From Bugula neritina (taxonomy: Eukaryota > Animalia > Bryozoa): a DNA stretch of 64,000 nucleotides. Location: NCBI GenBank assembly GCA_964035545.1, contig OZ037773.1, forward strand, positions 7,159,751-7,223,750. The letters run 5' to 3'. The translations under genes and the position numbers were made by a program. A model generated the notes under the pieces. It was not told the origin of the DNA and ran no database searches. It saw nothing but the letters and a program-made list of their open reading frames with translations. This document shows, piece by piece, positions 2,203 through 32,300 of the stretch (the first letter of the stretch is position 1; each line of letters begins with the position of its first letter).

Positions 2203-3606
2203 ACCCCTTCAACCAACATTGCTTCTAGTCTCAGCTCTGCTACACCCAATCTGTCTCAACTTTGTGAACTCATTTTTATGATAATTATAAATTTTTACAT
2301 TTTAAGTTGCTTCGGTAAAAAAAGTGACTTATGAACGCAGTTTTCAATTAACCCTCTCATGGATCTTAAATATTAAAAGATTTTTTTCTATTTGCATTTT
2401 AAAATTATTTCATATTATCTCAGAATAGTGCACCATAATAGTAGATCATAGTTTCTTATGATATAAACATGACTTGATACATATTTTTTTTTTATTTAAC
2501 ATTTTCCCACTCATTGCATAGTCAATTTATACACTTTATTCTTGAAACACAATAAACCACGAGTACTTAAATCTAGTCATTTATAGTGTGTTATCGTATG
2601 AACAGCAGTCTTACTCTGTATTATCACTAGTTAACTTACTTGATCACACTGAGTTTGTCTAAATATCAATTTTACATGATGCTAGTTTAATCTAATTACT
2701 TTGTATGTATAGCATTTAAATATTTCAAAGATGTTTTTTACTCTTGTTAAATAAGAAGTTACTAGAACAAATGGAATGTTAGGATACTCTGCTCACCATC
2801 CTCCAATAAGGAGGGTTATTATTCGAATTCTGTGTTTTTATTAGTCGAATAAGCTAAGTTGGAAATGAGCTGATTGTGGTTGAACAACTTCCCAACCTTC
2901 CACAGAGTAGAAGGATTCGTACTGAGACTAAGGTGTAACTACAGTAGGCCTAAATTACTCGTAAGCTGAGTTGATGAGAGTGGTTATACAAGTATAGTTA
3001 GTTAGCAGGAATAAGGGAATAAGATAGGAGTTCATAAATCTAACTATAATTTTTATTTACAAAAGATAAAACATTATATAATATTTATATAAAATATTAT
3101 ATAAATATATTATTTTCTTGACTAGAAGATGATGCTGAAAGGAGGAATCCCGTAAAAATAAATTTATCTAAAGCCACCTGGTGTCTTATTTGTGTATGAG
3201 GCCCAGCTTTGAATATATGTGGACATGGAAAAAAGGTATCATAACTCCAGAAAGGTGGGCTTTCTGACTCATGCATGTAGCTAGCAATGCAAAGAAAAGC
3301 TTTAAAAGCTTTAAGGTTTTAAAGCTACTCTTTGCTTTTTTAGCTAGCTATGAGATGTTAGCTTAGATATTCTCCATTTGCTATACAAAAAAAATAGAGG
3401 TAAGCTCAAGTTTGTAAAATTTACTCTGCAGCTATATGTTAATTTTAAAGTTTTATATTAATTACTAATGTTTTGTGTCATTGCATACATTTAAAGTTAA
3501 TCTTCAAAAATATTTTTATTAGTTCAGTTATTGCTGCATATGCAATAATGAGAACTAAAAACTAACCTATGATAATTTTAGAGTTGAGAATTTTTTAAAT
3601 TTAAAA

Positions 3607-6263
3607 ATGGTTGAAAGAAGTGACAAGCAGCCGAACACAGCTGACATTGTGATGAGCAGCATTTCCAACATGTGAGTGTCTGTTGATGATTATTATTAAA
3701 GTACAGAAAGCAAATCAACTATTCTATAGCTTTTTAATTTTACATTAGATGACACTTACTATAATATAAACAAATTTTTGCATATATTGTAACTTAAAGC
3801 CTAATACAACTCAAAAAAATGTTGCTAATTGCAAACTTTACACTTTTCTGCTCACTAAAAGTATTAAAAATTAAATTTCAGGTTAGAAAGACGAGCTAGC
3901 ACATTTGAAAGCCATTTCATAGACTTTGAGTTCAACAGAGTCCTACAGCCTCAACCCAAACTTGCATTCATGAAGGCAGTTTTCAAAGAGATGACTAAGA
4001 ATGACTTGGAAAGTTTCAAGAACTTTGCTAATGCTATTGAAATGTTGGGTGAGTGAAAATAAGCTTGGAAAATCTGTTAGGCAAGATAAATTATCGCATC
4101 ACCAATGGTACCATACATACAAGGTACCATACATACAAGGTGTCATACATACATGGCGTCATACATACATTGTGTCATACATACATTGTGTCATACATAC
4201 ATTGTGTCATACATACATGGTGTCATAAATACAAGGTCTCACACATCCATTATGTCATATATACATGGTGTCATACATACATGGTGTCATACATACATTG
4301 CGTTATACATTGTGTCATTCTTTGTGTCACCTACTATAGCAACCAGGGAAAGAGGCTTGTGGTCCTACATGTTGAGTTGCAGTACAGAAACTTACAGAAT
4401 GAACAATATGGGCTTTCATCACTTTTTAGCCAGAAATCCTATCACAATACAGTTAAAGGAAACTATAACCTGGGAAAATATTGCTGCTGTAAGTATTACA
4501 CAGCACGTCTACCTTATACTTCAACTTGTTTCACAGAAATGCTTGAGTTTATACAAGTATGTATGTGTCAAGTTCAATACTTGAAGGTTGACAGCTTTGA
4601 GTCTCAATAAAGCATTGTTTGAAAACAGATTTATATTTTTGTGTAAATTGGTACTTGGTCAAAGATAAAAACATTCCCCCCCCCCCCCCCCGGCCATTTC
4701 AGCAGGCATGCCAAATTTTTTGTTTTGTAACTCTTATAATGCTTTTAGTACTAAAGTTTATGTAGTGTTGATTGTGCATTTTTGAATACTACTTGTACAT
4801 TACAGTTTATCAAATTTATAATATCCGATATGATAATATTTGCAAATTCAAATTAGTCATGAATTTGATAAATTCTGTCTTTCATTTATACTAGGTAATA
4901 GTTACAGCTCTGCTTATGACACTTGTTCCTGTATGCCATGTAATAACTGCATGGCACTATACAAGCATGCACTTGGTCCTACATGTCATGTAATAACTGC
5001 ATGACACTAGACAAGTACTTGTTCCTGTATGTCATGTAATAACTGTATTGCATTCAGTCAATAAACCTGCGTAGCTGTGAATAGGTGTGCTAGGCTGTTG
5101 ATTGCATTTGGAACTATTTAGAACATGTTTGGATCTTGATTTGCATGGATACTTTTGCAGTTGCTTGCGCTGATGGGAAGAGCTGCATGTGAATGTCTGT
5201 ACATAGTAGGAAATTCAACCCGAGTAGAAGGGATGATACAATGGTGTGTAGGTTTCTTTGATATTCCATTAAAACAAGGTGTCAGTATCAACGAGTGGAT
5301 CGATTCAGCTGGGGGTTGGGTAAGTTGATAGCCTGCAGGGGAGAAAACCGGAAAGTATGTCAAAAATACTACAGTTATGTTATTATGAAATGATGTTTAG
5401 CTTCTTTTGCCAAGGAGGTAGTTGATCAGCTCCAACAGTGTCAGCAAAGTAACAATAAAATGTGTTGATTCCTTATTGGTTACTCATTCTTCTACTAAAA
5501 TGTATTACAATATATGTTGGTGCAATTTATAAACCAATGTTTTGCTCATTTTTGACTTAAGTTTTATTTGTGTTGTCATACACAAAGCATTGTGGTGCCT
5601 TGGGGTTTTGCATTATTAGAACTTAATATTAAGTTTCATGAGCTACAGAGTCCATAGATTTGATATGTGAAGAAATCTAATATGAAACTAATTTCTCTTG
5701 CCCTTGCCATGTGATCATGTTTTAGGTTTAAAAAAATAAAAGAGAAATAAACTGACTGTTTTGTCACACTTGGTAATAATTTTCTTTGTATTCTCTAGAG
5801 TAAAATATTTCATGAGATGCACAACCTGCAGAGCCAGGCATTTAGGAACAAGACAGATGGTTACGGAAGCACCAGCTCAGAGAGCCACCAGGAACCATCA
5901 CATGGTGACTCATTCCCTCCAGAGTGCATGAAGAGAGACAGTCCTAGAGGCTTTCTGCAGTCTCCATGTGACCGGACCACCATGGTAGCCAGGCTACATG
6001 GCTCTCCTCTCCAGATGTTGGATAAAGCAAGTCAAGATGTGAACAGCTCTAAGAGAAGAGGATTCTATCAGATTCCTCAACCTACAGCTGGAGCAAATGG
6101 CGTTCAGCTGGAAGGAAACTATTCTTTATTTCAGGGTCTCATTTCAGTGGCACAGACAGATCTCTCTGTAAAGCCTGAACCTCCCTTTCAAATATTTCAT
6201 TCAACTTCACAGTCCTATATTTCAGGATTTTACACAGTTCCCCAGTTCCCCTATAGACTTTAG
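3607..6263 (+). CDS. Divergent Bcl-2-family protein, paralog A (about 334 aa); exons 3607-3671, 3882-4048, 4340-4488, 5161-5319, 5799-6263
   Basis: Open spliced frame: MVERSDKQPNTADIVMSSISNMLERR (BH4-like) ... ETITWENIAA|LLALMGRAACECL (BH1-like) ... SINEWIDSAGGW| (BH2) with a phase-0 intron right after GGW. Exon lengths 167/149/159 are identical in paralog B. AATAAA at 6470. Confidence 0.85.
4105..4320 (+). repeat. 16-bp intronic minisatellite (TGTCATACATACATTG-like) in intron 2 of paralog A
   Basis: Visible tandem array; absent from the equivalent intron of paralog B. Confidence 0.85.
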
Positions 6264-8217
6264 CTCTCCTATTTTGTTGTAAGTTTAATATTATGAGCTT
6301 TCTTTATTTGTTGATTTTCTATGTCAGTTATAGAACTTTTAGTTGCAACTTCTTAGTGTTGCATTGTCATATGTCAATTTTATTTGAAACTTGTAAACTA
6401 TGTCGTTGAATGTTTCAGCTTTTGTTTCAAGTACTTAATCTCTGTTAGACTTTTGGCGCATCATTTTTCAATAAATTTTGTATTGAAGTTTCCAACATTT
6501 AAAAGTTTACTCTGTCATACACAGCATTGTCACAAGCAATAAACAAAACACTTGAAGTCTCTTAGTAAGTTTGAGTAAGTTTAAAAATACCTAAAAGAAA
6601 TAAGTATTAACTCATGGGTTTAAAAAAGCTCAACATTTGATACTAGAGACAGTATTTCTACATATACATATTTTATGTGTAGAGTAGTTAATATCTGTTA
6701 TGTATAGATACAGCAAAAGGTGTTTGAGATAAATGACACTAATATAACACAGTTGATATCATATACTAACTGCATACAGTTCTACTACCTGACTAGCAAA
6801 ACTGAGTCTTATTGAGTGACGGGAAATAATCATGAAGTAGTCAAAATTAAGCCTTTTAGGGCATTCAATACACTGTGCACTGGCTAGATTATAATTCCCT
6901 ATGGTAGCAGAACTAAACGCAACAAATTCTCAAACAATTTTGTAATCTAATCTTCATTTCATATAAAACACTTATTTGGAGTGTTTTTTAACAGAGGCTG
7001 CTGCATGCCCAATGCTTCTATTTATAGCACGTAATGCAAATATGTTTTAGATCATTCTATATTTCTGCCTGGTTATTATTTTTTGTGAAGTGTGTCAGAT
7101 ATTTTTTTTAAAATCTCTAAATAAAAATTATAGTACTTGTAGCTTTCAATCGAATGAAAGCAAAAAGCTTTTCGATTGTAAAGCTACTCTTTGCTTATAG
7201 CTAGACCTCAGAGTAATACTAACTTAGACACTTTACGTTCTCTGTTCAGAAAAAATCATATTACACTAAGGTTTGTACAACTTACTTGTAAAATCTTTCA
7301 ATTTACTATTTTAAAAGCTGGGATTTGTATCGATCATCATTTAATGCAAACCATTATATTATATAATCCAATATGATTCTCAATAGCTTAGCAAATAATG
7401 TTTTCTTATCTATTTATTTTATTATGCAATGATTATAATTAAAATATCACTTCAGAAAACTCTATTTACTACCTAGAAAAAAGCCAATCATAAGTTTGTA
7501 AAAAAGTTATGCTGAAATGTGTGTGTGTGTGTGTTTTATTTTCATCATAACATAGTGTTTTACAACTAGGATAATTTACAAGAGCAGAACAAGCAATTAG
7601 AAAAGAAACATAGTAACAAATAACAGTATATCAAAATAAGCTGTCGGAAATGACAGCTTATTTTGATATGTTTTTGTTTACTGATTTAAATGTTATTTTT
7701 ATCTAATATGTTTTTATATTTATAACCAATCTGATACCCATCAGGCCATTCCAAGTCAAGAGAAAGGTTAGGCAACTCCGATGAAGCTAAACTCATGTTT
7801 ATATTTAGGCCTCTTTTAGCACCAGAGTAGAAAATGTGGGACTCTCGATTAGAACTGAATACCTTGTCAGCTGACTCTCCTTTGCCTGTTATATCTTAGT
7901 TCTGCATGTATTTGTTAAGAGAGTAGATCGAGAAAAGTGAAGCAAGTTTTACTTTAAACCAATTTGTCAGCAGCTTCAAAAGTGAAGTCATTTATATGTG
8001 AAAAATGTCAATTTGCTTATGAAATTGTAAATATAGAAGAAAATATCAAGTTGAAAGATGAAAACAGTATATAAACATTAAAATTTTAATATGGTATCAC
8101 AATAGGAAAAACCTTTTTATTAATCTGTTTTGCTTTTTTCCATATAACAATGAAGATATGCATGTTCATTTTAGAATAAATAATTTTAAAAAGATTTAGT
8201 TAGTCAAAAAAGTGGAG

Positions 8218-10295
8218 ATGAGTGAAGAAAAGCCAGATACAGCCGACATTATAATATGCAGCGTCCTGAACACGTAAGTGGCCTACTGATAGATCAATGA
8301 CAATTTATAGAAAGTAAACCATTACAGCTTCATTTCTACTATGTGTCATTTGATGCAGCTCATTTTTCAACTAAAACCTTAAACCACCCTGATTATTGAT
8401 GAAAATCTAAAAAGACAGGTTTGGCCTACAGCATTATTAGTTAGTCAATGTTCTGTTGCTAAACTTAACATGTTGGAAATTAAATTTTAGATTGGAAAGA
8501 CAGAAGATGGTGTTTGAAAACCATTTTATAGACCTACAGTTCAACAGATCCTTGCAGCCCCAACCAAAGCTTGCATTCATGAGGGTGGTTCTCCAAGCGA
8601 TGACCAAGAATGACTTGACGAATTTCAGAAACTTTGCTAATACAATAGAAATGTTGGGTAAGAAAGGTAGATTGATCACATTTGTTTAGATAGATATTTA
8701 TTGCTCCTTCTGCACACGGTACCATTCTAATAACAAGTTCCTAAAATCATTAACGGCAAAAGAGAAACTTGAGATGCTTCATATAATATGTCAATATATA
8801 ACAATGACCCATCTTAATCTAAAGCTAGATAAATAAGTTTTTTTGCTATTTTTCTATAGCAATTTGTTATCATTTTAAAATATAAATTGTGATGTCGTTT
8901 TGTACAACTGCCACTGTATTTTGAATGTCTCACTTGAGTTAGATTCGTGTGGTATGTCATAATAGTCAGGCATTGAATTATTGTATAGTAACACCTAGTA
9001 TAAACAGCCGTTTCTATAGCAACCAGAGAAGGAAGCACATGGTCTGACCTCTTGAGTTGCAGAATAGAGGCTTTCCAAATGACTCATGAGATGTTTCAGG
9101 ACTTCCTGACAAAAAATCCTATCACAGAACAACTGACTGAAAATGTGACTTGGGAAAATATTGCTGGAGTAAGTACCGTGCAGTGAGTCTAGTACATAAG
9201 CTAGCAGCTAACAAAGTTGTCGTTAACCTAATTTTACCAAAGTTTGAACCAAACTTCAACATTTATGGTTTCAAGCTGTGTACCAAGTGACAAAGGTTTT
9301 TTCATCAACCAGTCTGTATTGCAATGAACTATGATATATAAATATGTGTAAACTATGTATATGTAAACTTCAATATTCTTAGTTTGAGACACAAGTAAAT
9401 GTTGTGATATCTTATGATGATACAAACTCTAAGTGGTGAATTATTCACTTTTACTGTGCCATTTTCCAACCCCTATAACTGGTGACACTTGTTCCTGCAT
9501 GTCATGTAATTAATGTATGGCACTAAAGAAGCACGTGCTCTTGAACTCCATGTAATAAATGTTTTATTTGGTTACACTTTCGGTCAATAAACTGGTGTGT
9601 TTTAAGCTGTTATGTACTTCTTAGATTTTTCAAAACCTGTACGTATCTTGATTTGCATGGATACTTTTGCAGTTGCTTGCACTGGTGGGGAGAGCTGCCT
9701 GTGAATGTCTGTACATAGTAGGAAACTCAACCCGAGTAGAAGGGATGATACAATGGTGTGTAGGTTTCTTTGATATTCCATTAAAACAAGGTGTCAGTAT
9801 CAACGAGTGGATCAATTCAGCTGGAGGTTGGGTGAGTTGATAGCCTGCAGGGGAGGCAATCGCAAAGTATGTCAGAAATATTACAGTTATGCTATTATGA
9901 AATAATGCTTAAATCTAATTTTATTTTAAGCTAAAAGCTGTGCAACCATTTAATAAGAAATCAATCCTTTTTTGCTTGTTATGCATATTTATGTAGATAT
10001 CACCTAATGTTTTACATGATGTGTAATATAATGCAGTTATTATAGGCCTATTGCTGTTAATATAGTAAAGTTATTGTATCGTTGTTATTATAATACAGTT
10101 ATTATATTATATCTATTGTATAGTGGTCAATATATTAGTGTGAAAAATGTAAATCTATGTTAAATACTAACAGTTCATGTTATCTTATATTAGTTCTGTT
10201 TTCTCCAGAAGCAAATATTCCATGAGATGCAAAGAGTACAAAGCCAGACTTTAAAGGGAAGAAAAAATAGTTCGATACCAGAAGTAAATAAGTAG
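8218..10295 (+). CDS. Divergent Bcl-2-family protein, paralog B (about 205 aa); exons 8218-8273, 8491-8657, 9020-9168, 9673-9831, 10209-10295
   Basis: MSEEKPDTADIIICSVLNTLERQ ... ENVTWENIAG|LLALVGRAACECL ... SINEWINSAGGW|KQIFHEMQ..EVNK*; same intron positions and phases as paralog A; AATAAA at 10845. Confidence 0.85.
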
Positions 10296-11271
10296 CCAGC
10301 TTTATACCGAGCGGGGCCAACACTTTCAGAGTTTAAAGGAAAGAGCAGCCCTAAAAGTCCTTTATAATCTCCATGTGACCAGACCACCATGGTAGCCAGG
10401 CCACATGGCTCTCTTCTCCAGATGTTGGATAAAGCAAGTCAAGATGTAAACAGCCTTAAGAGAAGAAAGTTCCATCAGATTCCTCAACCTCCAGCTGGAG
10501 CAAATGGCGTTCAACTATTCTCTCTTTCAGAGTCTCATTTCAGTGGCACAGGCAGATCTCTCTGTAAAACCTGAACCTCCCTTTCAAATATTTCACTCAT
10601 AGTCCTATACTTCAGGATTTCTTCTCTCGCTGCATTTTCCTAAAAGTCTTCAGATTAATTGACAATTGAGTTGGTTTCTAATAATTTCTTCGCAAAGTAT
10701 TAGTTAAAAGTTTAAAGTTTTATGTATTGCTATGCTATGCTATATGTCAGCTTCATTTACAACTTTTGAGTCTGGTTAAAGGTTGACATTTCTGGTGCAA
10801 GTTTCTTATGCAATTCTTGATTAAAAGTTTAGTGCAGAATTTTCAATAAATCTAGTCTTGATTTCAAAAACTTGGTTACATCTGTTTTAGGAATAGTCAA
10901 CATTCTTAGACTATATAATGTACCAAACAAACCTTCTGAAATTTTACATACGGCAATAACTTATTTCTAAAATTATGATGGGAAATAATTACTCTAAGAA
11001 AAATTGTGACAAGATTTCAACTTTAGTAAAAGTGCAATTCATACACATTGAACTAGCACTGCATACATAACATAGCATACCTACACCTTGTATATTTAGG
11101 GTTGTGTCCTTTTTATTAACTTTTTTGTATTTATAAAACTAGACTTAAAGCTGTGATCTACCCCTAGTGTACTTGTCATACAATGCTAGCAGATTCTTCC
11201 TTCGAGGAATAATTTACATCTGATTCTAAATATTCTAACTCCAAGACAATTGGTTAATCGTTAGAACACAT

Positions 11272-17305: not shown

Positions 17306-20300
17306 CTACTCGATGTCAATCAGCAGATCTCCGGCACTCAGCTTCTGCCCTGAGCCGATGTGAATCTGTTTGACTAATCCGGACTTGGGAGCTGAGACTA
17401 CAAGCTCCATCTTCATGGCAGTGAGCACGACTAGGGGGTCACCTTTCTCAACCTTGTCTGACTCTTTGACGTAGATTGATACAACCTGACCTGTAAGAGT
17501 AAATATTTATACCTGTAAGAGTAAATATATACCTACAGAGTAAATACATACATACAGAGTAAATATATACATACAGAGTAAATATATACCTGTAAGAGTA
17601 AATATATACATACAGAGTAAATATATACATACAGAGTAAATATATACATACAGAGTAAATATATACATACAGAGTAAATATATACATACAGAGTAAATAT
17701 ATACTTACAGAGTAAATATATACATACAGAGTAAATATATACATACAGAGTAAATATATACATACAGAGTAAATATATACATACAGAGTAAATATATACA
17801 TACAGAGTAAATATATACATACAGAGTAAATAAATACATACAGAGTAAATATATACATACAGAGTAAATACATACATACAGAGTAAATATATACCTACAG
17901 AGTAAATACATACATACAGAGTAAATACATACATACAGAGTAAATATATACCTACAGAGTAAATATATACATACAGAGTAAATATAATTCCTACCAGGCA
18001 TGGGAGCTCCAACAGATCCCAAGTCTCCTTTCACAGCCTTTGGGTGAAATGATAACGTCTAAGAATAAAAATGACATAAAACTATACCCTAGCAAAGCAA
18101 CTTCAGTCAATTCTAGCCACACAACATAATTAAAAATAAAATCCAGTTTATTGTTTCAATAATCCAAACTAACATAGTGAAGTGTTACTAAAACATATAA
18201 CATAGTCAGAAGTTACAAGTATATCCTACATAATCGAATATAATCTAATAGAGATACTTACAGCTGTTTCCTTTTTGTCCTCTACATAAATAGTCCTCAT
18301 GAATCCATTAACCTCGAAGAAGACTTCACGTATTCCAGTTTCACTGTCCAAGTTTCCAATAGCCAGCGTTTTCACATTGATGATTTTTCCTCGCTCAATC
18401 TCAATCTACAGTATTGTGAGAAAGATATTCAACTAAATGTATACTGCACAGAATAGAATCAACTTACTCTGGTACAACACAACTCTCTCATGAATACGAA
18501 ATATCAAATGCTGAAAATGGTATGATTTTCGAATAGGCTTCGAAAAAAATTGAAATTTTATATCCTTCATTCAAGTGAAATAATTGTTTCAGCAGACGAG
18601 TCGCAACACTGAAAGGTAAACAAGAAGCTGCTTGACACAGTTCTGTCACATAAAGTTGATGGAATAATACACTACATACTAAGTCCACTCCCGCTAAAAT
18701 ACTGCAAAAAACACTAATAATATAATCTTGAAAAACACGTCAAATATTGTCGGCAATCAGCAAAAAAACTTTTGAGATGAAAAAAAATGGAACAGAAACA
18801 ATCAAATATGAAGCAGCCTGATAATTCCACAATATAAACAGTAAAATAACAGCATATAATATTATTACAAGTCACCAACACACATGCAGTTTCTTGTATA
18901 GATGAAGAAACATCTGCTCTTAGCACATTAGTGTTCATATTGACAGCCTTTATGTGTGAGTAGATGTGTGCAGGACATATGTTACATAACGTGTATTGAT
19001 ACTACTAAATAGATACTAGAACTGCGAGTGAGCTCTGCACACCTACCTCGGTCTCCTCAGCTATCTCGGGGCCGACAAAGAAGATTCTGGTGTTGAGATG
19101 CTTCACCGGACCAAACTTCTGCACGAAACTCATGTAGTCGTCAAACACCTCTGGGTAGAGGGCACCACTCATCACTTCCTCATCTGACAGCACTGTGTTG
19201 TGTTTCTCCTCCAGAGAAGCCTTGAGTGCATCAAAGTCCAGTGGTGGCAGGGACGCTCCAGGCCGGCCCTCAATAATCTTAGCTCCTTTCAATACCTTCA
19301 CAAGGAATCAGAGGCTATGAAGTGAGTCAAAGGCTTGAGTTGCAGGTTAGAATGAATTACTAAACTTTTAATGAAACATATTTTTTCCAAAGTGGGGAAA
19401 TCTCGTATTAAAGCAAACTAAATCACAGTAATCAAAGGAGAGTAATGCTAGGAAAAATTAACAGAAGAATTGAATTTTAAGGCCACAGAATTAAACTCGT
19501 GTCTTTAGTTTTAAATATAGGATTTAGAATAAAATAATCAAAACCAATAAAATAGAGAGCTTGTATGAAAAATAATGTATAGCAAGCAATTAGTGTGAGT
19601 TAAAGCATCACAGCACCAACATATAAATGTGAAGTTAACTTCTCTTCACTACAGAGTCAAACAACTTCAAAAAGAGAAGACAACTTTAAAAAGAGAAAAC
19701 AACTCTAGGAAGAGGAGAGAGAATAGCTGGAATCTACTACTCACATGGTCACGCAAAGGCTGGGGGAAGCCGCCATGTGGAATGCCTATGTAACCTTGGA
19801 AGAACTCCACTACAGAGGAGGGGAAAGACAACTCCGCAGCTTGCTCAACTACTTGCTCCTTAGTTAGGTTGTTGGTCACCATGAACTGTGCCAAATCTCC
19901 AACCATTTTAGATGAAGGAGTCACCTGCAAGACAGAAGCTAAATAGGTAAGCGTACCATGGTAAGGGCTAGTGCAATACGCCTCCAACTAAAACTATATG
20001 ACCTTAGGCTATTGTCAAATCACTGAATGAACTCACATAATAGTGTAGAGTTAGTATTAGGCAGCAAACATGTGTACAGGTCAACTGCAAGAAAACCTTG
20101 CTGTAAAAAGTCTCTTGAAACATTCCAGGAACATTGAATTATCAACTGTCTCAAAATAAAAAATCAGACAACTCAAATCACTATTATTAATAGACGGGTT
20201 TCTATTATTGAGTAAGCGGTCTGAAGAAGGGGAGAGGGTCACTTACCTTCACAATATCCCCAACTACTTCATTAGCTTCAGTATATTTCTGTTTAACTTC

Positions 20301-23300
20301 TTCAAATTGATCTCCCAAGCCAAGATTATATGCCTGGAACTGTAGGTTAGTATACTGTCCACCTAAACATTCCAACCATTTATAATGTGCCAACCATAAT
20401 CAACAACACAAATTGTTGTGTTAAATTGAAAAACTGCATTGCAAATGATGAGAATATAATAGAGCTAGAGGGTAGCCATTTTCTTCTCACATGACGTATT
20501 ATTGGCTAGTCACACGGTCCACAAAATGTGATTGGCCCATGACTAACTCTACCTACTACTCAGTATATAACTGAAATAAATGTACACTAGTATGCAATGT
20601 CTTACTTCAAAGATCTTCTATTTAGTATTATAACCTCTAGCATAAAATGCAAACTCTCTACGGACTAATTTATCCAACAGCAAGCCTACCAGGTATTTCA
20701 TTGATATACACGTCTGAATTGCCACTGCCCATTGTGGTGGTCGTCTCAAAGGGTGCATACAGGTGTCTTGCTTGTCTCCAGTAGGCGGTGTATGTCGATA
20801 TGTCCTTCAACTTCAGACCTAAAGTTATGACAGAGGATTATAAATAGCCATAGAGATGAGAGAAGGGTAACTAATGAAAGTTCACTTTACACACACCTGT
20901 CTCAAGGTCAACACACACCTGTCTCAAGGTCAACACACACCTGTCTCAAGGTCAACACGCACCTGTCTCAAGGTCAACACACACCTGTCTCAAGGTCAAC
21001 ACGCACCTGTCTCAAGGTCAACACACACCTGTCTCAAGGTCAACACATACCTGTCTCAAGGTCAACACACACCTGTCTCAAGGTCAACACGCACCTGTCT
21101 CAAGGTCGGTGTTCTGCACGGAGGCCACTAAGGCACCCATACTGGGCTGAGAAGTAAGCCCCGACATAGAATCGACAGCACAGTCTACAATGTTAGCTCC
21201 GGCCTGAGCCGCAGCCAACATGGCCGCCACGCCAGCTCCAGCAGTATCGTGAGTGTGCACGTGTACAGGAGTGTCAGGGAACTTTGTCTTCAGGGCATCA
21301 ACCAGGATTCTGGCAGCTTCAGGTTTCAGCACACCAGCCATGTCCTGCAGCAGACGTATTTGTGATTCATCAGAATACAAGATACATTTTCATAAGCGCT
21401 TATTTCATGTCATTACACTTTGAGACCCGGATGAGTACTAAGATTTGTGGCTATTTTCTAATCAAGCTACCAACTAAAGTGAAAGTTAGTTGATGAATGC
21501 ATGGATCTATAGCTAAGAGAAGATCAGTTATTGGATGTACACATACATACTCTGTTTCTTTACAATACATCCACAAACTGATATCACAGCCCTAATTTTT
21601 ACTAACAATCAGTACTACTAATAGTAGAGAGAGCTAACAACTGAGTACCTTAATTCCAATAATGTGAGCCCCGGCCCGGACCAGTTCTGAAGCTAAGTCT
21701 ACATAGTACTTCAGGGTGTACTTAGTCTTTGTGGGATCAGCGATATCACCTGTGTACGCGATGGTGGCTTCAACAACTCCCCCTGTGAGTGTAGTGAAGT
21801 AGAAACATGCGTGTTATACTTGGTTACCAGCGTACAGTCTGTATAGTAAATACAGAGTACGTATTAAATACAGTGTAAGTATAGTACATACAGTGTAAGT
21901 ATCGAATACAGTGCAAGTATTAAATGCAGGTAAGTATAGTACATACAGTTTGTACAGTACATACAGTGTAAGTATAGTACATACAGTGTACGTATTACAT
22001 ACAGAGTAAATAGAATATACAGTGTAAGTACAATAAATACAGTGTAAGTATAGTACATACAGTGTAAGTATAGTACATACAGAGTAAATAGAATATACAG
22101 TGTAAGTACAATAAATACAGTGTAAGTATAGTACATACAGTGTAAGTATAGTACATACAGAGTATGTATTAAATACAGTGTAAGTATAGAATATACAGTG
22201 TAAGTATAGTAAATACAGTGTAAGTATAGTACATACAGTGTACGTATTACATACAGAGTAAATAGAATATACAGTGTAAGTATAGTAAATACAGTGTAAG
22301 TATAGTACATATAGTGTAAGTATAGTAAATACAGTGTACGTATTACATACAGAGTAAATAGAATATACAGTGTAAGTATAGTAAATACAGTGTAAGTATA
22401 GTAAATACAGTGTAAGTACAGTACATACAGTGTAAGTATAGTAAATACAGTGTAAGTATAGTACATATAGTGTAAGTATTATATACAGTATATGCAGTAC
22501 ATACAATGTAAGTATAGTACATACAGTGTAAGTATAGTACATACAGTGTAAGTAACAACTCACCAGCCTGACCAACAGCCTCTACTCCTAGTAACATGTT
22601 AGGCATATAGTTGAGACTGTCAAATACTCTGAACACATCCATGCCATTTTCCACGGCTAAATCACAGAACCTGCAAATATACAAGTCAGCAAATGACCTA
22701 AAAGATTGTGTCAGCAAAATTAAGTGTCAGTAGAGTGACCTATTAAATAGCGTGAGTCATTAAAGGTCACCTGAAACTTTTTATTCTTAAAATATTTGGG
22801 TTTTACTGATTATCATCAACATAGTGTTTTGTACAGCTTAAGATTTTACAGGGCAACATTTGACTTTAAATGATGCATTTAGATGACATACTAGTTTTCT
22901 CGTAACATAAAATTGACATTTTTGATGCACATATATTGGTGTGAAGCTGTAATCGTATGTTTTCCAAGAAGTACTCGTATAAAGAATTGAGGTTTAAACA
23001 TGTTATCTATATAAGTATTATTCCACATGATATGAGGTGAGTAGAGAGAATATGCAGAGAGAATATGCAGAGAGAATATGCAGAGAGAATATGCAGAGAG
23101 AATATGCAGAGAGAATATGCAGAGAGAATATGCAGAGAGAATATGCAGAGAGAATATGCAGACAGATGAACCTGTGTATAACATTGTCAGGATAGGCAGC
23201 GTATCCGACAGCGTTGGCACCTCTCAGCAGCATCTGAAATGGTATGTTGGGAATCTGCTCTCTCAGAGTTCGTAACCTTTCCCAAGGACATTCGTACAGA

Positions 23301-26300
23301 AACCTCATGGCAACGTCAAATGTTGCACCTGCAATTATATAATTATATATATTATACTTGATATATAATATATTATATATCTAATTCATTATATGTTATA
23401 TTTAATGCATCATTATATTATATTTAATATATCATAAACTCATAATATCATAATAAAAATAAAAACCATTAGTAAAATAGAAAACGGAGTAAGTAAACTA
23501 TTACAAACTGGTAGAATAGTAGTTCCAAGTTTCTAAACTTTCTGTCAATTATATATACATAATGTATATCAAAAGCAGATTACAAATAATTAGAATTTGA
23601 AGATAACATTAAATATAAATTTCATAAAATAAGCTAGATCAGATATTAAAATACATCATAGCCTAAATTCATATCAGCTAACATAGGCTAGATAGCTCAC
23701 CGCCCCACATTTCCATAGAAAACAAGTCAGTCATATTATGAGCCACAAACGGAGAAATGTTTTTAAGGTCAATAGTTCTGACTCTCGTGGCTAGAAGGGA
23801 CTGATGTGCGTCTCTGAAAGTTGTGTCAGTTAGCAGTAGTCCTTTCCTAGCATTGACAGCTTTGACGAGGCCTTTAGGACCCTCCCTGAGCAGGAGATCT
23901 TTGAGGCCAGGTGGCGGTGGACCTGAGGTTATACAAAGATTTACAATTTAATAAAAACTATGTAGAACTATAAGTCCACAGACCGTATCTTAGTATAGCC
24001 GTGAACTTGTGATAAACTGGCATCTGAAAAACTTGCATTTAGTAACTAAAAATAGAGACAGGGTGGAAAGGTTGAGATTTACTGGGAATACTAAGCAGGG
24101 GTATGGAGAAATAAAACTATCTTATGACTGCATTATGTAAGGTTGGATGATATCTTTTGTTAGGAGTTGTCATCTCCTACATGGTACATATACACATTTA
24201 TGTCAGCAAAGTTTTAAGTTTTCCAGTGTTATAATAGGCGCTGATGGCAGAAACTTCGTAAGCATCATGTTACATGTTTGTCTCCACGAAGCTTTGTCAT
24301 AAAACATGTTTTATTCTGCTTGTACAGTCTATTGTTTAGCAAGTGAAAACTTACCAAGTGGAGTGGCTGGAATGGACGGAGGTACACTGGTTGGTTTGAG
24401 GTCTGTCACAAGAGGGGTGGCCGGGCCATTCACCAACACATTACCTACATTTATGTATAGGAATATAGGCTAACTTTCTATATAAGTGAATACATGAACC
24501 ACATGTGGCCTATTCTATATCACAGGTCTGCAGTAAATATCGAGATGGTATCGTTATTGTCAGGGTACATGGTAAACGTTCCTAATAAATCAATAACTTT
24601 CTACAGGAAGTTGAATGTCAAAGCTCAAGTATAGAACAGAAATATCTCTGCCACAACCGTCACAGACTTTCATGTACTGACAAACTATTAGAATAGAATA
24701 CTAATATGATATTACTACATAACTGTGAAAATATTTCAGATAGTTGGGAGTTGTTTCCACTCTTGATAACAGACCCAAAAACATTCCTTTGCAACTTGAC
24801 ATCTAAAACTACCATATTTTTGAAAAAGAATTAAAAAAATAACAACCATTCAATAGTAATAAAGAGTAGGTAACGCACCCAAATAATGGACGAGTTTCTG
24901 TGCTCTGTTACGAGAGGGAACAAACTGAGTAAGCTCGGGGTTACTATCAATAAAGGAAGTGTCAACATAGCCTTTGGAGAACGCCTGGTTGTTCATGACA
25001 TTTAGTAGAAATGGGATGCTGGTCTAAAAGTAGTGACATTAGTTTTTTATAGTATGATATAGCAATACAATGTATCATATAAAAATATAAAATATGATAT
25101 AATGATATATCAAAGTTGGTATAGTAATATAGTGTATAATATAGTGTGTGAAATAGTAATATGTAGTATATAAGATAGTAATCTAGGAATAATATAGTAA
25201 TATATTGAATGATATAATAATATAACATTCGATTTAGCAACATAGTGTGGTATTCAGTATTATAGTGCAAAACATAGTAATATTGTGCGATACAGTAACA
25301 CATAGCATATAAACACATAGCACATAGTAATACATAGCGTATGACATACCTTCACCCCACGAATACGGAACTCCATCAGGGCTCTAATCATCTTGTTAAT
25401 GGCAGCCGGGTGGGAGTCAGCGTGAGCGATGACCTTAGCTAAGAGTGAGTCATAATAGGGAGAGATCTGGGCTCCAGCGTGTGCATTGGCAGCATCAATC
25501 CTAATACCCATTCCCTCTCCACTTCTGAACACCTGTCAAAGAAATATTAATATGTTCACGTTTGGCAGGTTTACATCACAATGTTGTGAATAAAGCTATA
25601 GAGCTCAATGCATGTCTGCCACAATGCTTGAAAGAACTGAAAAAGAGATCTTTGAAATATATTGCATATATGCTATCCATATGACTGAAGTAAAAATATT
25701 TAGCCTTAAGATCTTCACACATATACTCATTCTAGTTGAGTACTGGTCAACACGGCCCCTACTCTCACCTCAATTCTACCAGTGTCAGGATGGAAGGCGT
25801 TAGCAGGATCCTCAGTAGTAACTCTGCACTGTATTGCCGCACCATTGCAGTGGATATTATCCTGTATTAGCCCTAGATCCTTCAGTGTGTGTCCCTCCGC
25901 AATTCTTATCTGACTCTGTACTAAGTCTACACTGTAACAACAGATAGTCAAGGATTTGAGAGCTAATGAGCTTTGCTGAGAAAAAGATTTGCAGTTAAAA
26001 AAAATCAAAATTTTATCAAATCAAAGTATTGTGTGCATCTGGATTCTAAAGCCTGAAATTAATTTCTCATCGAATATGATTTTTTAAATAGCTTCAGTTG
26101 GAGTTATCAGCCCATAAATCTTGTGTTTCAACTTCATAATTATAATATAACTTATTATATAGAGACACGATATCATTGAAGCGCGAGAGATAATATATAG
26201 GTCAGGGATTATATATATGTCAGAGATCATATATAGGTCAGTGATCATATATAGGTCAGGGATTATATATAGGTCAGAGAGAGGTGGTATATAAGTCAGG

Positions 26301-29300
26301 TTGAAATGAACATGGATTCCATAACCTTATACTACTAGTACAGCGTGCTGCTGCTTCAAATGCTGTCAGCAGAAAGGCCCTTATAGTTTCTATAACCAGT
26401 ACATGAAATAGGAATCCTGTAATAGCTGATGAACATAAGCTATAATAGTGGGAGATGCAGTAACTGGGAGGATAACTCTCAGCACATGTGAAAGATTATA
26501 AACAGCATTCACTAATACTCCACTCTCTAGTTACAGTTTAATGTAAAACTTATTGATTATGTGGAGAGGTTGAGACTTTATTTACTGACAGCTTACAGCA
26601 CTTCCTGTTTGGTCTCCGGCCACAAGTATTGTATTCCAATAACGATCGTTTGGGATTATAATTTACACTATAGTGTTGTGATTATATATATACAGCAACA
26701 TCTGCTACCCTCTCTTACCATGGAATGCAGGAATCAAGTTTTAATAAACATATTTCACCTAACAAGTCTCAATCGCCTTGGCATTAGTACAATTCGTAAC
26801 TCGTGTAGTATTTAAAGGAAAGAATATACCTTACCCAGTGACCTCTTCACTGACTGTGTGTTCAACTTGCAGTCTAGCATTGACCTCTATGAACCATGGC
26901 CTGTTCTCCTGATCCACTAGAAACTCCACTGTACCAGCATTCTACAATAAGTTTATAGCAGACGTTAAACAGCAGACGAAAAAGAAGACAATTCTACCAA
27001 CAGCATACGTACTGTAGAACCTTGGATAGAGGTCACCAACAGATAAACTGTGAAGCGTTTATTATACTAGTGATGCAGAGTGAGAAAACCACAGCTAGGC
27101 CATAAAGATTTACATATCAATAGCAAGATGCAAGCTACTGCTGGTATGTTAGGAACATTAAGGTCAAGGTAGCAGTCTGCAGTATAAAGGTCACGTTTCT
27201 CAACATAAACAAGTAATTGGCTCAGGAAATCTATACCCTGGAACCTTCCAGCACTTTAGAGAAGCTTCAAAAGTTGAATAGAAAGAGATGAATACAAAAC
27301 ATGCAGGCTGATCGCAACACAAAAAGATCAGAAGATAATTTTTCAATTACAAGAATGAGTCAAGTTGAATAGCTGAAGACTGCATGTAGTTTACAACATG
27401 GCTGACTAGTCAGTCTCTACTTCACAGACGGGTCTACTTTAGAGAGAGGGAACAACTCTCAACGGCTGAGAACTACAACAGCTAATAAAGTGTACACGAG
27501 GAGGCTAGTCCTCGGCCAGCGTTAGTTGTGATGCACATAAAGATAGAAGTTTTGCTATTAGGTATGTATGCTCAGTTATCATAATCAATCTGATAATGCA
27601 TTTCAAATCAGCCAATCAACTTTCACGAGGCTTTAACTCAGGTGAATGGGAGTTTACCTGGTATCCTACAAACTTTGTCAGTTTGACAGCGTCATCAATA
27701 ATCTTCTGTCTGACAGCGGGGTCGAGAAATGCTGCCGGGGCAATCTCCACTACCTTCTGGTACCTTCTCTGAACAGAGCAGTCTCTTTCATACAGATGGA
27801 CAATGTCGCCAGTGGCATCACCTGTCACAGTTCAACAGAGATTAAACTGGTGAATATGTATGTACAGTCTGTGTGTAAGAGAAGATAACCCCTAGTAAAA
27901 CTGCGGGTTCTATACAACTACACAGTGTGTCACTATATTCTTCAACCAGTAATAGCATCAACACATCTTCAGTAAGTATAGTGTAAAGGTATATACACCT
28001 ATACCAGTGCTGAGCTAAAGAGCATACCAAATAGTATTGTTGCAAATACAGTTGTTATCACTGCAGTGGTAATAACTAATATGATCATAGAGATAGTTGC
28101 TAGAGCATGGAGTCAAAGGATTGCCATTATTTTACACGCCATAAGATTATTCCTTGCATATAGTTGACTATGTAATAGTTTTTAGGATAAATAAAAATGG
28201 AATAGTTACCATTAGCTATGATTGTTGATTTGTGCAATGACAGCAACTCAATCTATTTCATGTATAAACGTACCGAGAATTTGCACTTCTATATGCCGAG
28301 GTTTGACGAGGTACTTCTCAATAAAGAGAGCTCCGTTACCGAAGGAAGACAATGCCTCGGATGTGGCTCTTTCAAACTGCTCTCGTAAATCCTAGGCAGT
28401 AAATATAGAGATCTTATAATATGTACTATACAGTATACACGGTATATACGTAGTGTATATGTACTATACAGTATATACTATACAGTACACACGGTATATA
28501 TGTAGTGTGTATGTACTATACAGTATATATATATAAAATACAATTAACTGAAAACCAACATTTACTATAGAAAACATGAAAGTAATAATAAAGTTAATTT
28601 TTCCTGAACAAGAATTTGTGTAGAAATATTGAATTGTGATTCATTATTGATTTCATAAATACTGATTATTGCTATACTCAATATCTGGAGTGTGTAATAG
28701 GATGAAGTACTGGTAATCCAGTTGTATTTATAGTACAACTGGTATGTTGATTTCACGGAAAACAACATTGCCAGAAATATTTCATAAAAATTGTAGGAAA
28801 GCAAAAAATGTTGCCATAAACAGATAGCATGTAGCAGGATGCCTAAAGGTGGTGTACTAGGATACAGAGATGTGACACAGATCCTGGTGTGAAGTAGGGA
28901 TGTCTGGTATTGAGTTCACACCAGGACACCACACAAACTTCTACTCAATGCTCCATTTACTCACACATTACTAACTTTCACTTCACGCGGATACACTCTT
29001 TATATAAAGCTTTAGTTTAGTAGGTTGAATATTGGAGCTACTAATGCTACAGTCCAGTTGTTTGTAACATGCCATTAGATGCAGCCATTACTAGACAAAT
29101 AATCAATGCTTCACCTACCACTACACAGCATAAAGTAGAGGAAAATAGAAGAATTAAGATCTACTAATCACCAATTATTATCAATTACCATTATATTTAT
29201 ACATAGGACATTAGTTTGCCCTTTATGACTACAATATATAATCTGTTTTATACTGTTTCTCTAACAACAGCTGCCGCTAATACTAAAACTATTACTACTG

Positions 29301-32300
29301 CTGCCTAAGAACATTACTACTGCTGCCGATACTGTGACCATTGCTGCCGTTACCTCCTTATTATTCACAATTCTCATCCCTCTGCCTCCTCCCCCATACG
29401 CTGCTTTCAGTATAGCAGGATATCCGTACGTCTCACAAAACTGTAACGCCTCTTCCCATTGGGTGATGGGTCCGTCACTTCCCGGGACCACATCAACACC
29501 TAAAGCAGAAAATAGAGTTGTTATACAGTATAACAGAGCGGTAATAGGGTAGAATAGAGGGGTAATACAATATAATGAGGTGGTAAAAAGGTAAAACATA
29601 GTGGAAAACTTGCAATATTTGTCAAACCTGACAAAGCCTGCAGCTAACATGTATTTCTTGACTATTTTCTTAAATAAACTGAGAGCTAGGTTCATCACAA
29701 AGAATATTTTTACCAGTCAACTCAATGTAAATTGCACCAGACAGAAATACAGACACATCAGCATATTATACAGTGAACATGCACTTTACTATTAACCTTC
29801 AGTTGAAGGATATAATTTACTATCCAGGGGTAACCACAGGCATGCCTGAGACAGACAGAGTTGGAGTAATACAGCATATAATACTCTGTATACCTTTCCT
29901 ATAGGTGCTAGAGTTGGTATTACTAAGTAACACAGCATATATCACTCTGTATATCACATCAATAGGTGCTAGAGTTGGTATTACTAAGTAACACAGCATA
30001 TATTACTTTGTATATCACTTCTACAGGTGCTAGAGTTAGTATTACTCAGTTACACAGCATATAATACTCTGTATATCTATTCTATAGGTGCTAGAGTTAG
30101 TATTACTAAGTAACACAGCATATAATGTTCTGTGTATATTTTTTCTATAGGTGCTAGAGTTGCATTGAGTGTTGCACTGTATCTATTAGTAGTAACACTT
30201 ACTGAATACATCCCCTGCACCATGCAATGTACAGACATTAGTGTCACATGAAGCTTATTGTTGTTGTTATTGTGTCTCTATTCAAAACATCTACTTATAA
30301 CTTCAAGTAAATGGAGTATTATCTATTCCTAGTGTTTTGAGGAGATCTATATACATAGTACTCAAATTATATACATAGTACTTAGTAGGGCAGCTGTTCC
30401 ACAGGCTTATTTTCTCACACAGCCCTGTTCGGACACAGTCATTGGTCAACAAAATAACTCTAAACATAGTGAAGTTGCACACCCTTACTAACAGCAGAGG
30501 CTGCCAAATCAACTGAAGAATTAGATGAAATAACATAAAATGTTATATTCCAAGTAACTTTAGACTACTGTAACCATTGCAGAGTTAAGGTAGACTAATT
30601 TAACAGTAGTTAGGATGTCAGTCACCAGCTTAAATGCAGTCAACGTTCATTGACACTAAGTACTGTGTTGAACCTTCACCTGCACGCACTGGCATCGTGT
30701 GTAGTAGCCTACTGACACGTGACCGAGTTGCGACTATGTCTGGTAATTATTTACATTAAGATAAGGCATGCAGGTAGAAGCCACAGACGACCGACCGTAG
30801 GGGTGCAGACGACTGTTGTGGTGCAGACGACAGAGGCAGATGGTATTAGTATAAACACTGTCAACAGTGTATGCCTGGATATTGAGGGGAAAGCATGAAA
30901 TGACTGCACTATGTTCAGATATCTACCAGTGCATGATTTAATATAAGAATTAGAGACTGGTAACACAAGTTTGAAGATAGGAGAGATTTATGGGACTAGA
31001 GGTGTGACTATAACAACTCAGTGATTAATAAACGTCTAATAGAAGAAGGTAAAAATCACTGTGACTGACAGTGAGTCACTGTGACTGGGAGTGAGTCACT
31101 GTGACTGGTAGTGAGTCACTGTGACTAACAGTGAGTCACTGTGACTGGCAGTGATGACTGACAGTGACCAGTGAGTCACAGTGATTAGACTATAACTCAT
31201 TTTATAGCAAGCTAATTCAGCTAGTTCCTAAGTCAGAGCACAAATAACTAACATGTTAGATGAATGAACAAGCATGAACAACACCAACAAACACACTCAC
31301 GTACCGGCAGCAATAGCAGCTTCTCGGGCTAAAACCTTGTCTCCCATCCGCCGGACGGTCTCAGGTTTTGGGCCAATGAATTTTATGCCAGCATCGATGA
31401 CGGCTTGCGAAAACTCAGCATTCTCTGAGAGAAATCCATAGCCAGGGTGGATGGCATCAACATCGTACTCCTAACACGCAGATAACAATGTAGTTCTTAG
31501 GCTAAACTCCGCAACAATCCCAACATAGTTGTAAAATTGTAGATAAAAATCACTAATAGCCGAGAGAAATATGCTAAAGTTAGTTTTGTTTTGGTTAGCA
31601 AAATCTATTGCTGCAAATTGTCATTGTAACCCCCTCCCTCCTTCCCTCCCTCCCGCACACAAATGTGATGGCAATACGACAGCCATGATGGATTATGATG
31701 GAACCTGCATGATTTACTGTATACTGATGTAAGCTGTTAGCAGTATAATAGTGACATAATAAGTATTACATATCTCAGCTTATGCATGTGTGAGATAGTC
31801 TCTTAAAGTGGTCTACTCTACAGGTAAGGTCTGTATTTTGTGAATACAGAGATATGTGCAGACATGTCTGGAATATCACCAACTCCTGACCCATCAAATA
31901 GAGAGAGTTATCTCACTAGTGTTTAAGTATGTAGTGTTTTAATGAATAGAAAATACAACCATAGAACTACGTTAACACTACACATTTATAGTGTGTCAGC
32001 GTACCTTAGCTACATTAACAATTTCAGGAATATTCAGATATGCTGCAACTGGGGCCAATCCTTTTCCTATCAAATAAGATTCATCGGCCTTTAGCCTGTG
32101 AGTTGACTGTTTGTCTTCGTTAGAATAAACAGCAACAGTCCTTATCCCCATCTCCGTGGCACCTCGAAACACACGGATGGCAATTTCACCTGCAGTTGAG
32201 AGAGAGAGAGACTTATCATAAAGGGCGTCCATAAACATTTATATTGCATTGGCAATAAAACATGTGATATATCGCAGAGTCAATCAAAGTGAATAACATT

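Follow-up and report, generated by a model that had tools for sequence, protein, structure and literature searches.

Introduction

In canonical Bcl-2 family members, the glycine and the arginine of the BH1 motif contact the BH3 helix of binding partners, and Bcl-2 and Bcl-xL mutants in which glutamate replaces glycine at this position no longer heterodimerise. Bcl-G (BCL2L14) and Bfk (BCL2L15) have no membrane anchor and are cytosolic, while Bcl-rambo (BCL2L13) combines BH1-4 and a terminal membrane anchor with a long low-complexity extension after BH2. Poxviral proteins of the N1, A52, B14 and K7 type are soluble representatives of the Bcl-2 fold that work through surfaces other than the groove. 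Bcl-G is described in the accessible part of one report as a non-typical member in which BH2 and BH3 are present and BH1 is absent (PMC10244440), and in the accessible part of another as not pro-apoptotic (PMC3481120). At the gene level, nearly every bcl-2 homologue of animals contains an intron right behind the tryptophan codon of BH2 (PMC7527217). Here, we analyze a stretch of 64,000 nucleotides from chromosome 9 of the bryozoan Bugula neritina (G000:C9:7159751-7223750, hereafter the window), in which two tandem genes encode a divergent variant within the known Bcl-2 family and thereby exemplify a more extensive expansion specific to the lineage.

The two genes share with canonical Bcl-2 members the BH2 motif W-x3-GGW with a phase-0 intron after its TGG codon, the BH1 tryptophan, a central helix of hydrophobic character and an N-terminal helix that resembles BH4, and the profile-profile alignment between both groups is collinear. 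They differ from the canonical members by the presence of TWEN instead of NWGR, by the lack of both Gly-Asp in the BH3 equivalent and a membrane anchor, and by an extra intron inside BH1; in addition, they fall below Pfam detection when examined exon by exon. Their closest recognizable relative by profile search is a gene on chromosome 3 of the same genome (C3:19.929-19.931 Mb; a second copy lies next to it at 19.927 Mb). It shares with the pair the segments EWC-x-x-FF and WI-x3-GGW, the BH2-splitting intron and apparently also the BH1-splitting one, but keeps NWGK in BH1, passes the PF00452 cut-off and possesses a hydrophobic anchor exon (Kyte-Doolittle value over 19 residues, KD19, 2.36). 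Bcl-G and Bfk, with which the pair was compared by description only, keep a BH3 motif. The absence of this motif from the pair argues against membership in either group, and the fact that a tail-anchored gene of the same genome is its closest relative speaks for an independent origin of the pair. Bcl-rambo, likewise set apart by description, is reminiscent of the pair and its relatives in that 154 residues follow BH2 in gene 1 and about 1,000 in a paralogue on chromosome 2, termed C2b; the pair differs by the missing anchor and the degenerate BH1. The poxviral Bcl-2-fold inhibitors provide a possible working analogy only, because they have neither BH motifs nor introns, whereas the pair is cellular, intron-bearing and equipped with a clear BH2. 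By analogy, the closest working counterparts would be Bcl-G, Bfk and the viral Bcl-2-fold proteins.

Two tandem genes homologous to Bcl-2 proteins

We reconstructed the two gene models from the window sequence. Gene 1 (3607-6263, plus strand) and gene 2 (8218-10295, plus strand) consist of five exons each and encode proteins of 334 and 205 amino acids, respectively. All eight introns have GT...AG borders, the intron phases are 2, 1, 0, 0 in either gene, and the lengths of exons 2, 3 and 4 (167, 149 and 159 nt) coincide. An earlier note on this DNA had claimed two five-exon genes with equal internal exon sizes, and the rebuilt models are in full agreement with it. The same note stated that the track of open reading frames (ORFs) presents the BH2 exons only as antisense ORFs. 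This is true at a threshold of 60 amino acids: the minus-strand ORFs over these exons (5118-5363 and 9630-9815) comprise 81 and 61 amino acids, and the sense ORFs 57.

Profile comparisons demonstrate, at the level of sequence, a homology of the pair with Bcl-2 proteins that extends from the alpha3/alpha4 region across BH1 and the central hairpin up to and including BH2. When the spliced paralogues together with an orthologue (see below) were aligned by hhalign with 11 PF00452-annotated proteins, the match reached 86.6 % (P 4.4e-6), and W-E-N came to lie under W-G-R and BH2 under BH2. The extended alignment proved collinear across the whole protein and, with low confidence, set the N-terminal helix against BH4 and exon 2 against the BH3 region. 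Addition of the exon 3+4 cores of the chromosome-2 paralogues raised the match to 96.7 % (P 4.5e-10, 82 columns; six sequences against PF00452-annotated proteins). In the controls, the reversed query yielded 0.2 % and none of 60 column shuffles exceeded 5.4 %, with scores of 12.4±2.4 vs 60.5 for the actual query. The exon-4 alignment of the subfamily (A1), compared by hhalign with alignment A2, gave 92.1 %. Used as a profile against the PDB with E values up to 10, A1 returned 49 matches, 45 of them to Bcl-w, Bcl-2, Bak or Bax at the alpha6-BH2 position. A hidden Markov model derived from the genome's own Pfam-detected BH2 exons assigned 16.3 and 16.8 bits to exon 4 of the two genes, with a maximum of 8.6 bits in 1000 shuffles per query.

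Over the whole genome, the A1 profile retrieved five members with at least 85 bits. The next match, the exon at C3:19929510-19929647 (E 3.5e-4), attains 32.7 bits against PF00452 on its own, the gathering score being 31.4, and has matches to Bak and Bax in the PDB as well. The subfamily profile is thus connected through this intermediate with PF00452, which establishes homology to recognized Bcl-2 members. The relationship to the Bcl-2 family proposed in the earlier note is supported by the hhalign match of 96.7 % with clean controls, the chromosome-3 link and the BH2-splitting intron. Searches that relied on the individual pieces were less informative: Pfam applied to the eight exon pieces gave sub-threshold noise only (DEATH_SH3BP4, E 0.1; TnpV, E 0.1), and the look-alikes in the ESM Atlas for exon 4 (0.77) and for the tail of gene 1 (0.87), with low recognition in both cases, provided no usable lead.

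BH motifs, intron positions and C-terminal regions

The BH2 motif W-x3-G-G-W stands at the end of exon 4 and is invariant in all five paralogues and in the orthologue. The donor GT directly follows its TGG codon in both genes (5319/5320 and 9831/9832, phase 0), and this intron is also kept in the orthologue and in the three chromosome-2 paralogues. The sequence WIxSAGGW followed by a phase-0 intron, which the earlier note had emphasized, is therefore present in both genes at the position regarded as a hallmark (PMC7527217). A second phase-0 intron, situated five residues past the BH1 tryptophan, is common to the pair and the chromosome-2 paralogues; apparently, the chromosome-3 gene and the majority of local Bcl-2 members have it too. 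At 16 of the 29 Bcl-2-like places in the genome, the PF00452 matches start at model positions 50-60, many of them right behind CAG, which points to a widespread BH1-splitting intron.

In the BH1 equivalent TWEN of the pair, only the tryptophan of NWGR is kept. None of the five paralogues retains the glycine or the arginine, and the substituting residues differ (TWEN, HWRY, SWEL, TWQS). The earlier note had described the segment as BH1-like; hhalign sets W-E-N and its counterparts in the other paralogues beneath W-G-R. Neither protein contains a match to the BH3 pattern L-x3-[GAS]-[DE] or to a looser version of it, while vertebrate Bcl-2 controls do match. Kyte-Doolittle maxima over 19 residues past BH2 amount to 0.51 for gene 1 and -1.16 for gene 2; the sole strongly hydrophobic 19-mer (1.82) coincides with the predicted position of the central helix. 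Pattern search and hydropathy maxima thus agree for both proteins with the earlier statement that a BH3 motif and a C-terminal anchor are lacking. A hidden anchor exon was sought downstream of both BH2 exons, and all that was found there were AT-rich hydrophobic open frames in introns and intergenic DNA, without support.

The regions behind BH2 are variable. The tail of gene 1 (154 amino acids, rich in Ser, Pro and Gln) has no Pfam match and gave no atlas lead. In the chromosome-2 paralogue C2b, BH2 is followed by a Gln/Ser/Pro-rich open frame of 1038 codons without an anchor, which contains proline-rich repeats and likewise has no Pfam match. The tails of gene 1 and C2b (L017:4736-7849) are otherwise unrelated, and both end on aromatic-Arg-Leu (...PYRL and ...YFRL); this common ending may be due to chance or may represent a short C-terminal motif. 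Behind the stop codon of gene 2, positions 10368-10620 are 86.7 % identical to 5961-6230 of gene 1. The region 10296-10620 represents a tail that was truncated recently or, alternatively, a 3' untranslated region that underwent conversion.

Selection, gene conversion and an orthologue

Overall, genes 1 and 2 have diverged with dN/dS 0.16/0.57. Judged by their substitution rates, exons 2 and 3 of the pair are old (dS ~1.0) and constrained (dN 0.20 and 0.30). Exon 4 is identical at 152 of 159 nt, with a dS of only 0.16, which indicates its recent homogenization by gene conversion; the conversion tract (4970-5399 vs 9486-9911) is 82.6 % identical.

An exhaustive phmmer search with exon 4 against 1.84 billion proteins returned a single true match, P0001, an ORF fragment of an orthologue that runs into the intron. 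Two other matches were repeat artefacts, and a full-length annotated protein was not found among the sequences searched. The lineage-specific distribution suggested in the earlier note is supported by this outcome. Through P0001, two contigs of JGI metagenomes were reached, L014 and L015, the former of which carries the orthologue of gene 1. The exons on L014 are 93-96 % identical to those of gene 1 (exon 1, 95 %) and exons 1-4 are free of insertions and deletions, whereas the introns are 40-87 % identical with many such changes. All AG and GT splice sites are kept and the frame is open as far as the end of the contig. The contig probably stems from a sibling lineage of the Bugula neritina species complex. 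Comparison of gene 1 with this orthologue yielded dN/dS 0.021/0.22 in exons 1-4 and 0.041/0.17 in the tail; purifying selection therefore acts on the tail of gene 1 as well as on its folded part. The substitution patterns thus show that the gene pair is intact and under purifying selection. The locus is contained in a single public sequencing run, X1, which extends over introns as well as intergenic DNA and lacks splice joints; it is therefore a DNA-like run and uninformative on splicing.

A five-member subfamily within an expanded Bcl-2 repertoire

A weak match in the genome led to three further paralogues that are clustered at C2:19.834-19.846 Mb. In all three, introns 2-4 have the same phases as in the window pair, and in C2b intron 1 matches as well. 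On the evidence of profiles and intron phases, the subfamily comprises five members, two in the window and three on chromosome 2. A scan of metagenomes with an exon of a chromosome-2 paralogue found no relatives. The two genes form a tandem pair, as the earlier note stated, but not an isolated one: three more genes reside on chromosome 2, and all five belong to a genome-wide Bcl-2 expansion.

The extent of this expansion was assessed by a six-frame PF00452 scan of the complete genome G000 (216,009,554 bases), which revealed at least 29 Bcl-2-like places (L001-L010, L018-L036). For the published B. neritina assembly, 216.00 Mb and nine chromosomes are given in the available part of its description (PMC11480708). 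Arrays of Bcl-2 genes are present on chromosome 8 (9.87-9.94 Mb, 10.79 Mb and 5.1 Mb) and on chromosome 3. Nearly all BH2 exons of the genome end with GGW and are then followed by GT, and one locus, C8:9881992, contains stops. The accessible text of a 2022 review of Bcl-2 evolution lists about 11 Bcl-2 genes each for Hydra and Acropora and makes no mention of bryozoans (PMC8998228). No study of cell-death genes in bryozoans came to light in our literature search. The five-gene subfamily, the genome-wide expansion and the tail-anchored nearest relative together render the novelty of the pair smaller than first claimed.

Structure of the locus and neighbouring features

The coordinates of the exons and associated features are compiled in Table 1. 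Upstream of both genes lies a block of about 150 nt whose two copies share 70 % identity over 154 nt, with GT directly after the block in either copy. Judging by position and sequence, the block might be an untranslated first exon or a promoter common to both genes. A tandem repeat with a unit of ~16 nt (4100-4330) lies in intron 2 of gene 1. This repeat causes the long artefactual ORFs 4053-4610 and 4105-4584, which swallow exon 3 in the ORF track.

Table 1 Features of the gene pair in the window and of its chromosome-2 paralogues.
Feature	Position	Strand	Remarks
Gene 1 exon 1	3607..3671	+	Start codon; BH4-like helix TADIVMSSISN; ends in phase 2
Gene 1 exon 2	3882..4048	+	167 nt; helices aligned to BH3/alpha2-alpha3 region, without Gly-Asp
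Gene 1 exon 3	4340..4488	+	149 nt; BH1 equivalent ITWENIAA at end
Gene 1 exon 4	5161..5319	+	159 nt; central hydrophobic helix through BH2 EWIDSAGGW
Gene 1 exon 5	5799..6263	+	154-aa Ser/Pro/Gln-rich tail; C-terminal end ...PYRL
Gene 2 exon 1	8218..8273	+	BH4-like TADIIICSVLN
Gene 2 exon 2	8491..8657	+	167 nt; dN 0.20, dS 0.99 vs gene 1
Gene 2 exon 3	9020..9168	+	149 nt; BH1 equivalent VTWENIAG; dN 0.30, dS 1.03 vs gene 1
Gene 2 exon 4	9673..9831	+	159 nt; BH2 EWINSAGGW; homogenized with gene 1 exon 4
Gene 2 exon 5	10209..10295	+	28 codons, then TAG stop
Gene-1-like tail relic	10296..10620	+	3' of gene 2 stop; same frame, two in-frame stops, then frameshift
Upstream block, gene 1 copy	3276..3425	+	Candidate untranslated first exon or promoter
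Upstream block, gene 2 copy	7138..7286	+	Matches 3276-3425
Chromosome-2 paralogues	L016:5230-6185; L013:1501-1981; L017:3760-7849 (C2b)	-; -; +	BH1 equivalents TWQS, HWRY, SWEL

The DNA between the two genes harbours a high-copy element (7530-7729; contig word depth ~2450 vs ~80 elsewhere) with an 18-bp perfect inverted repeat around 7632-7673, which may be a repeat resembling a miniature inverted-repeat transposable element (MITE). Further downstream, the exons of a pyruvate-carboxylase-type gene are located on the minus strand (19005-29698; Pfam PYC_OADA, HMGL-like and CPSase_L_D2), and its introns contain long Tyr/Leu/Cys-rich repeat ORFs. Of two minus-strand ORFs at 47308-48985, the first gave a weak hint of a beta-propeller (E 0.001, far below the cut-off), and the other encodes acidic repeats of the SSKEDG type and has no Pfam match.

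Discussion

We consider it probable that genes 1 and 2 are tandem paralogues of a small, fast-evolving and non-canonical Bcl-2 subfamily. This subfamily would have arisen from a tail-anchored Bcl-2-like gene through replacement of the anchor exon by a disordered and rapidly changing tail, which would extend over 154 amino acids in gene 1 and ~1,000 in one chromosome-2 paralogue and would have been cut back to 28 amino acids in gene 2. With the anchor exon replaced in this way, the products are predicted to be soluble Bcl-2-fold proteins. As the glycine and the arginine of BH1 are replaced and their own BH3 equivalent is devoid of Gly-Asp, the classical exchange of BH3 helices in the groove at the mitochondrial membrane is probably not used. 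More likely, the proteins would function in the cytosol as regulators or adaptors and contact their partners via other surfaces and via the tail. Given homology, the motif composition tips the balance slightly towards products that operate via surfaces outside the classical groove.

Several observations weigh against this interpretation. PF00452 did not match any single exon at E values up to 10, the window is absent from the 29 places of the genome-wide six-frame PF00452 scan, and a phmmer search of the PDB with exon 4 remained blank. None of the PDB matches of the A1 profile is significant alone (E 0.5-4). The N-terminal half aligns to Bcl-2 at low confidence only, and the predicted Bcl-2 fold rests on homology over about half of the domain. 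In public runs, RNA support was found neither for any junction nor against an alternative anchor exon. Finally, the proposed soluble and groove-independent function is read from motifs, and partners could have co-evolved.

Co-evolution of partners is the core of an alternative in which the two proteins are ordinary apoptosis regulators, whose groove binds lineage-specific BH3 ligands that have changed along with it and which are recruited to the membrane via partners or via the tail. In its favour, exons 1-4 are under strong purifying selection, a tail-anchored Bcl-2 gene is the closest relative, the alignment of low confidence retains the pattern of hydrophobic residues at the equivalent of BH3, and the many divergent Bcl-2 genes of this genome could supply matching partners. 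However, the BH1 glycine and arginine are gone in all five paralogues, each time in favour of different residues, no anchor is present in any tail examined, and the glycine-to-glutamate exchange is the very change that costs Bcl-2 and Bcl-xL mutants their heterodimerization. On balance, we regard this explanation as rather unlikely.

Far less can be said for convergence, i.e., for an unrelated helical protein with an exon that ends in W-I-x3-G-G-W by chance. Blank Pfam and single-sequence searches and the survival of just the tryptophan of NWGR are what such a protein would produce, but a profile-profile match over 82 columns (P 4.5e-10) with clean controls would not be expected, nor would two intron positions with phases common to recognized family members, a significant genome-wide link to an exon above the Pfam cut-off and a list of PDB matches that is almost purely Bcl-2 family. 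A merely convergent motif was rejected on the basis of the profile-profile statistics with their controls and the shared intron positions, and we hold this origin to be highly improbable. The same verdict applies to the notion that gene 1, gene 2 or both are silent or degenerating pseudogene copies of an expanded family, for which we see scarcely any prospect. It was ruled out by dN/dS, which is ~0.1 for gene 1 against its orthologue and 0.2-0.3 between the paralogues in exons 2 and 3 at dS ~1; moreover, open frames are intact and splice sites canonical throughout both genes. These findings outweigh the missing RNA support, the loss of the gene 2 tail through two stops and a frameshift, and the precedent of at least one other family locus with stops (C8:9881992).

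Returning to the favoured non-canonical subfamily, a bolder extension is conceivable, which we offer as a speculation that is rather doubtful at present. The five genes might constitute a new class of soluble Bcl-2-fold adaptors that have abandoned the groove and in which a hypervariable disordered tail carries specificity. They would then form one arm of a large, diversifying bryozoan Bcl-2 repertoire, possibly serving colony-specific needs rather than mitochondrial permeabilization. If this were true, the repertoire could serve the cyclic degeneration and regeneration of polypides, the control of symbionts or innate immunity.

Taken by itself, the pair is one instance of an expansion and not a new kind of system. 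It illustrates that some Bcl-2 relatives in this genome have diverged too far to be recognized by Pfam exon by exon, yet are intact and under purifying selection. The two genes carry natural substitutions at the two positions of BH1 by which partner binding is defined in textbook members, and a presumably disordered tail in place of the membrane anchor. With at least 29 Bcl-2-like places, B. neritina is a useful organism for asking how the Bcl-2 fold diversifies and what it does away from the mitochondrial membrane.

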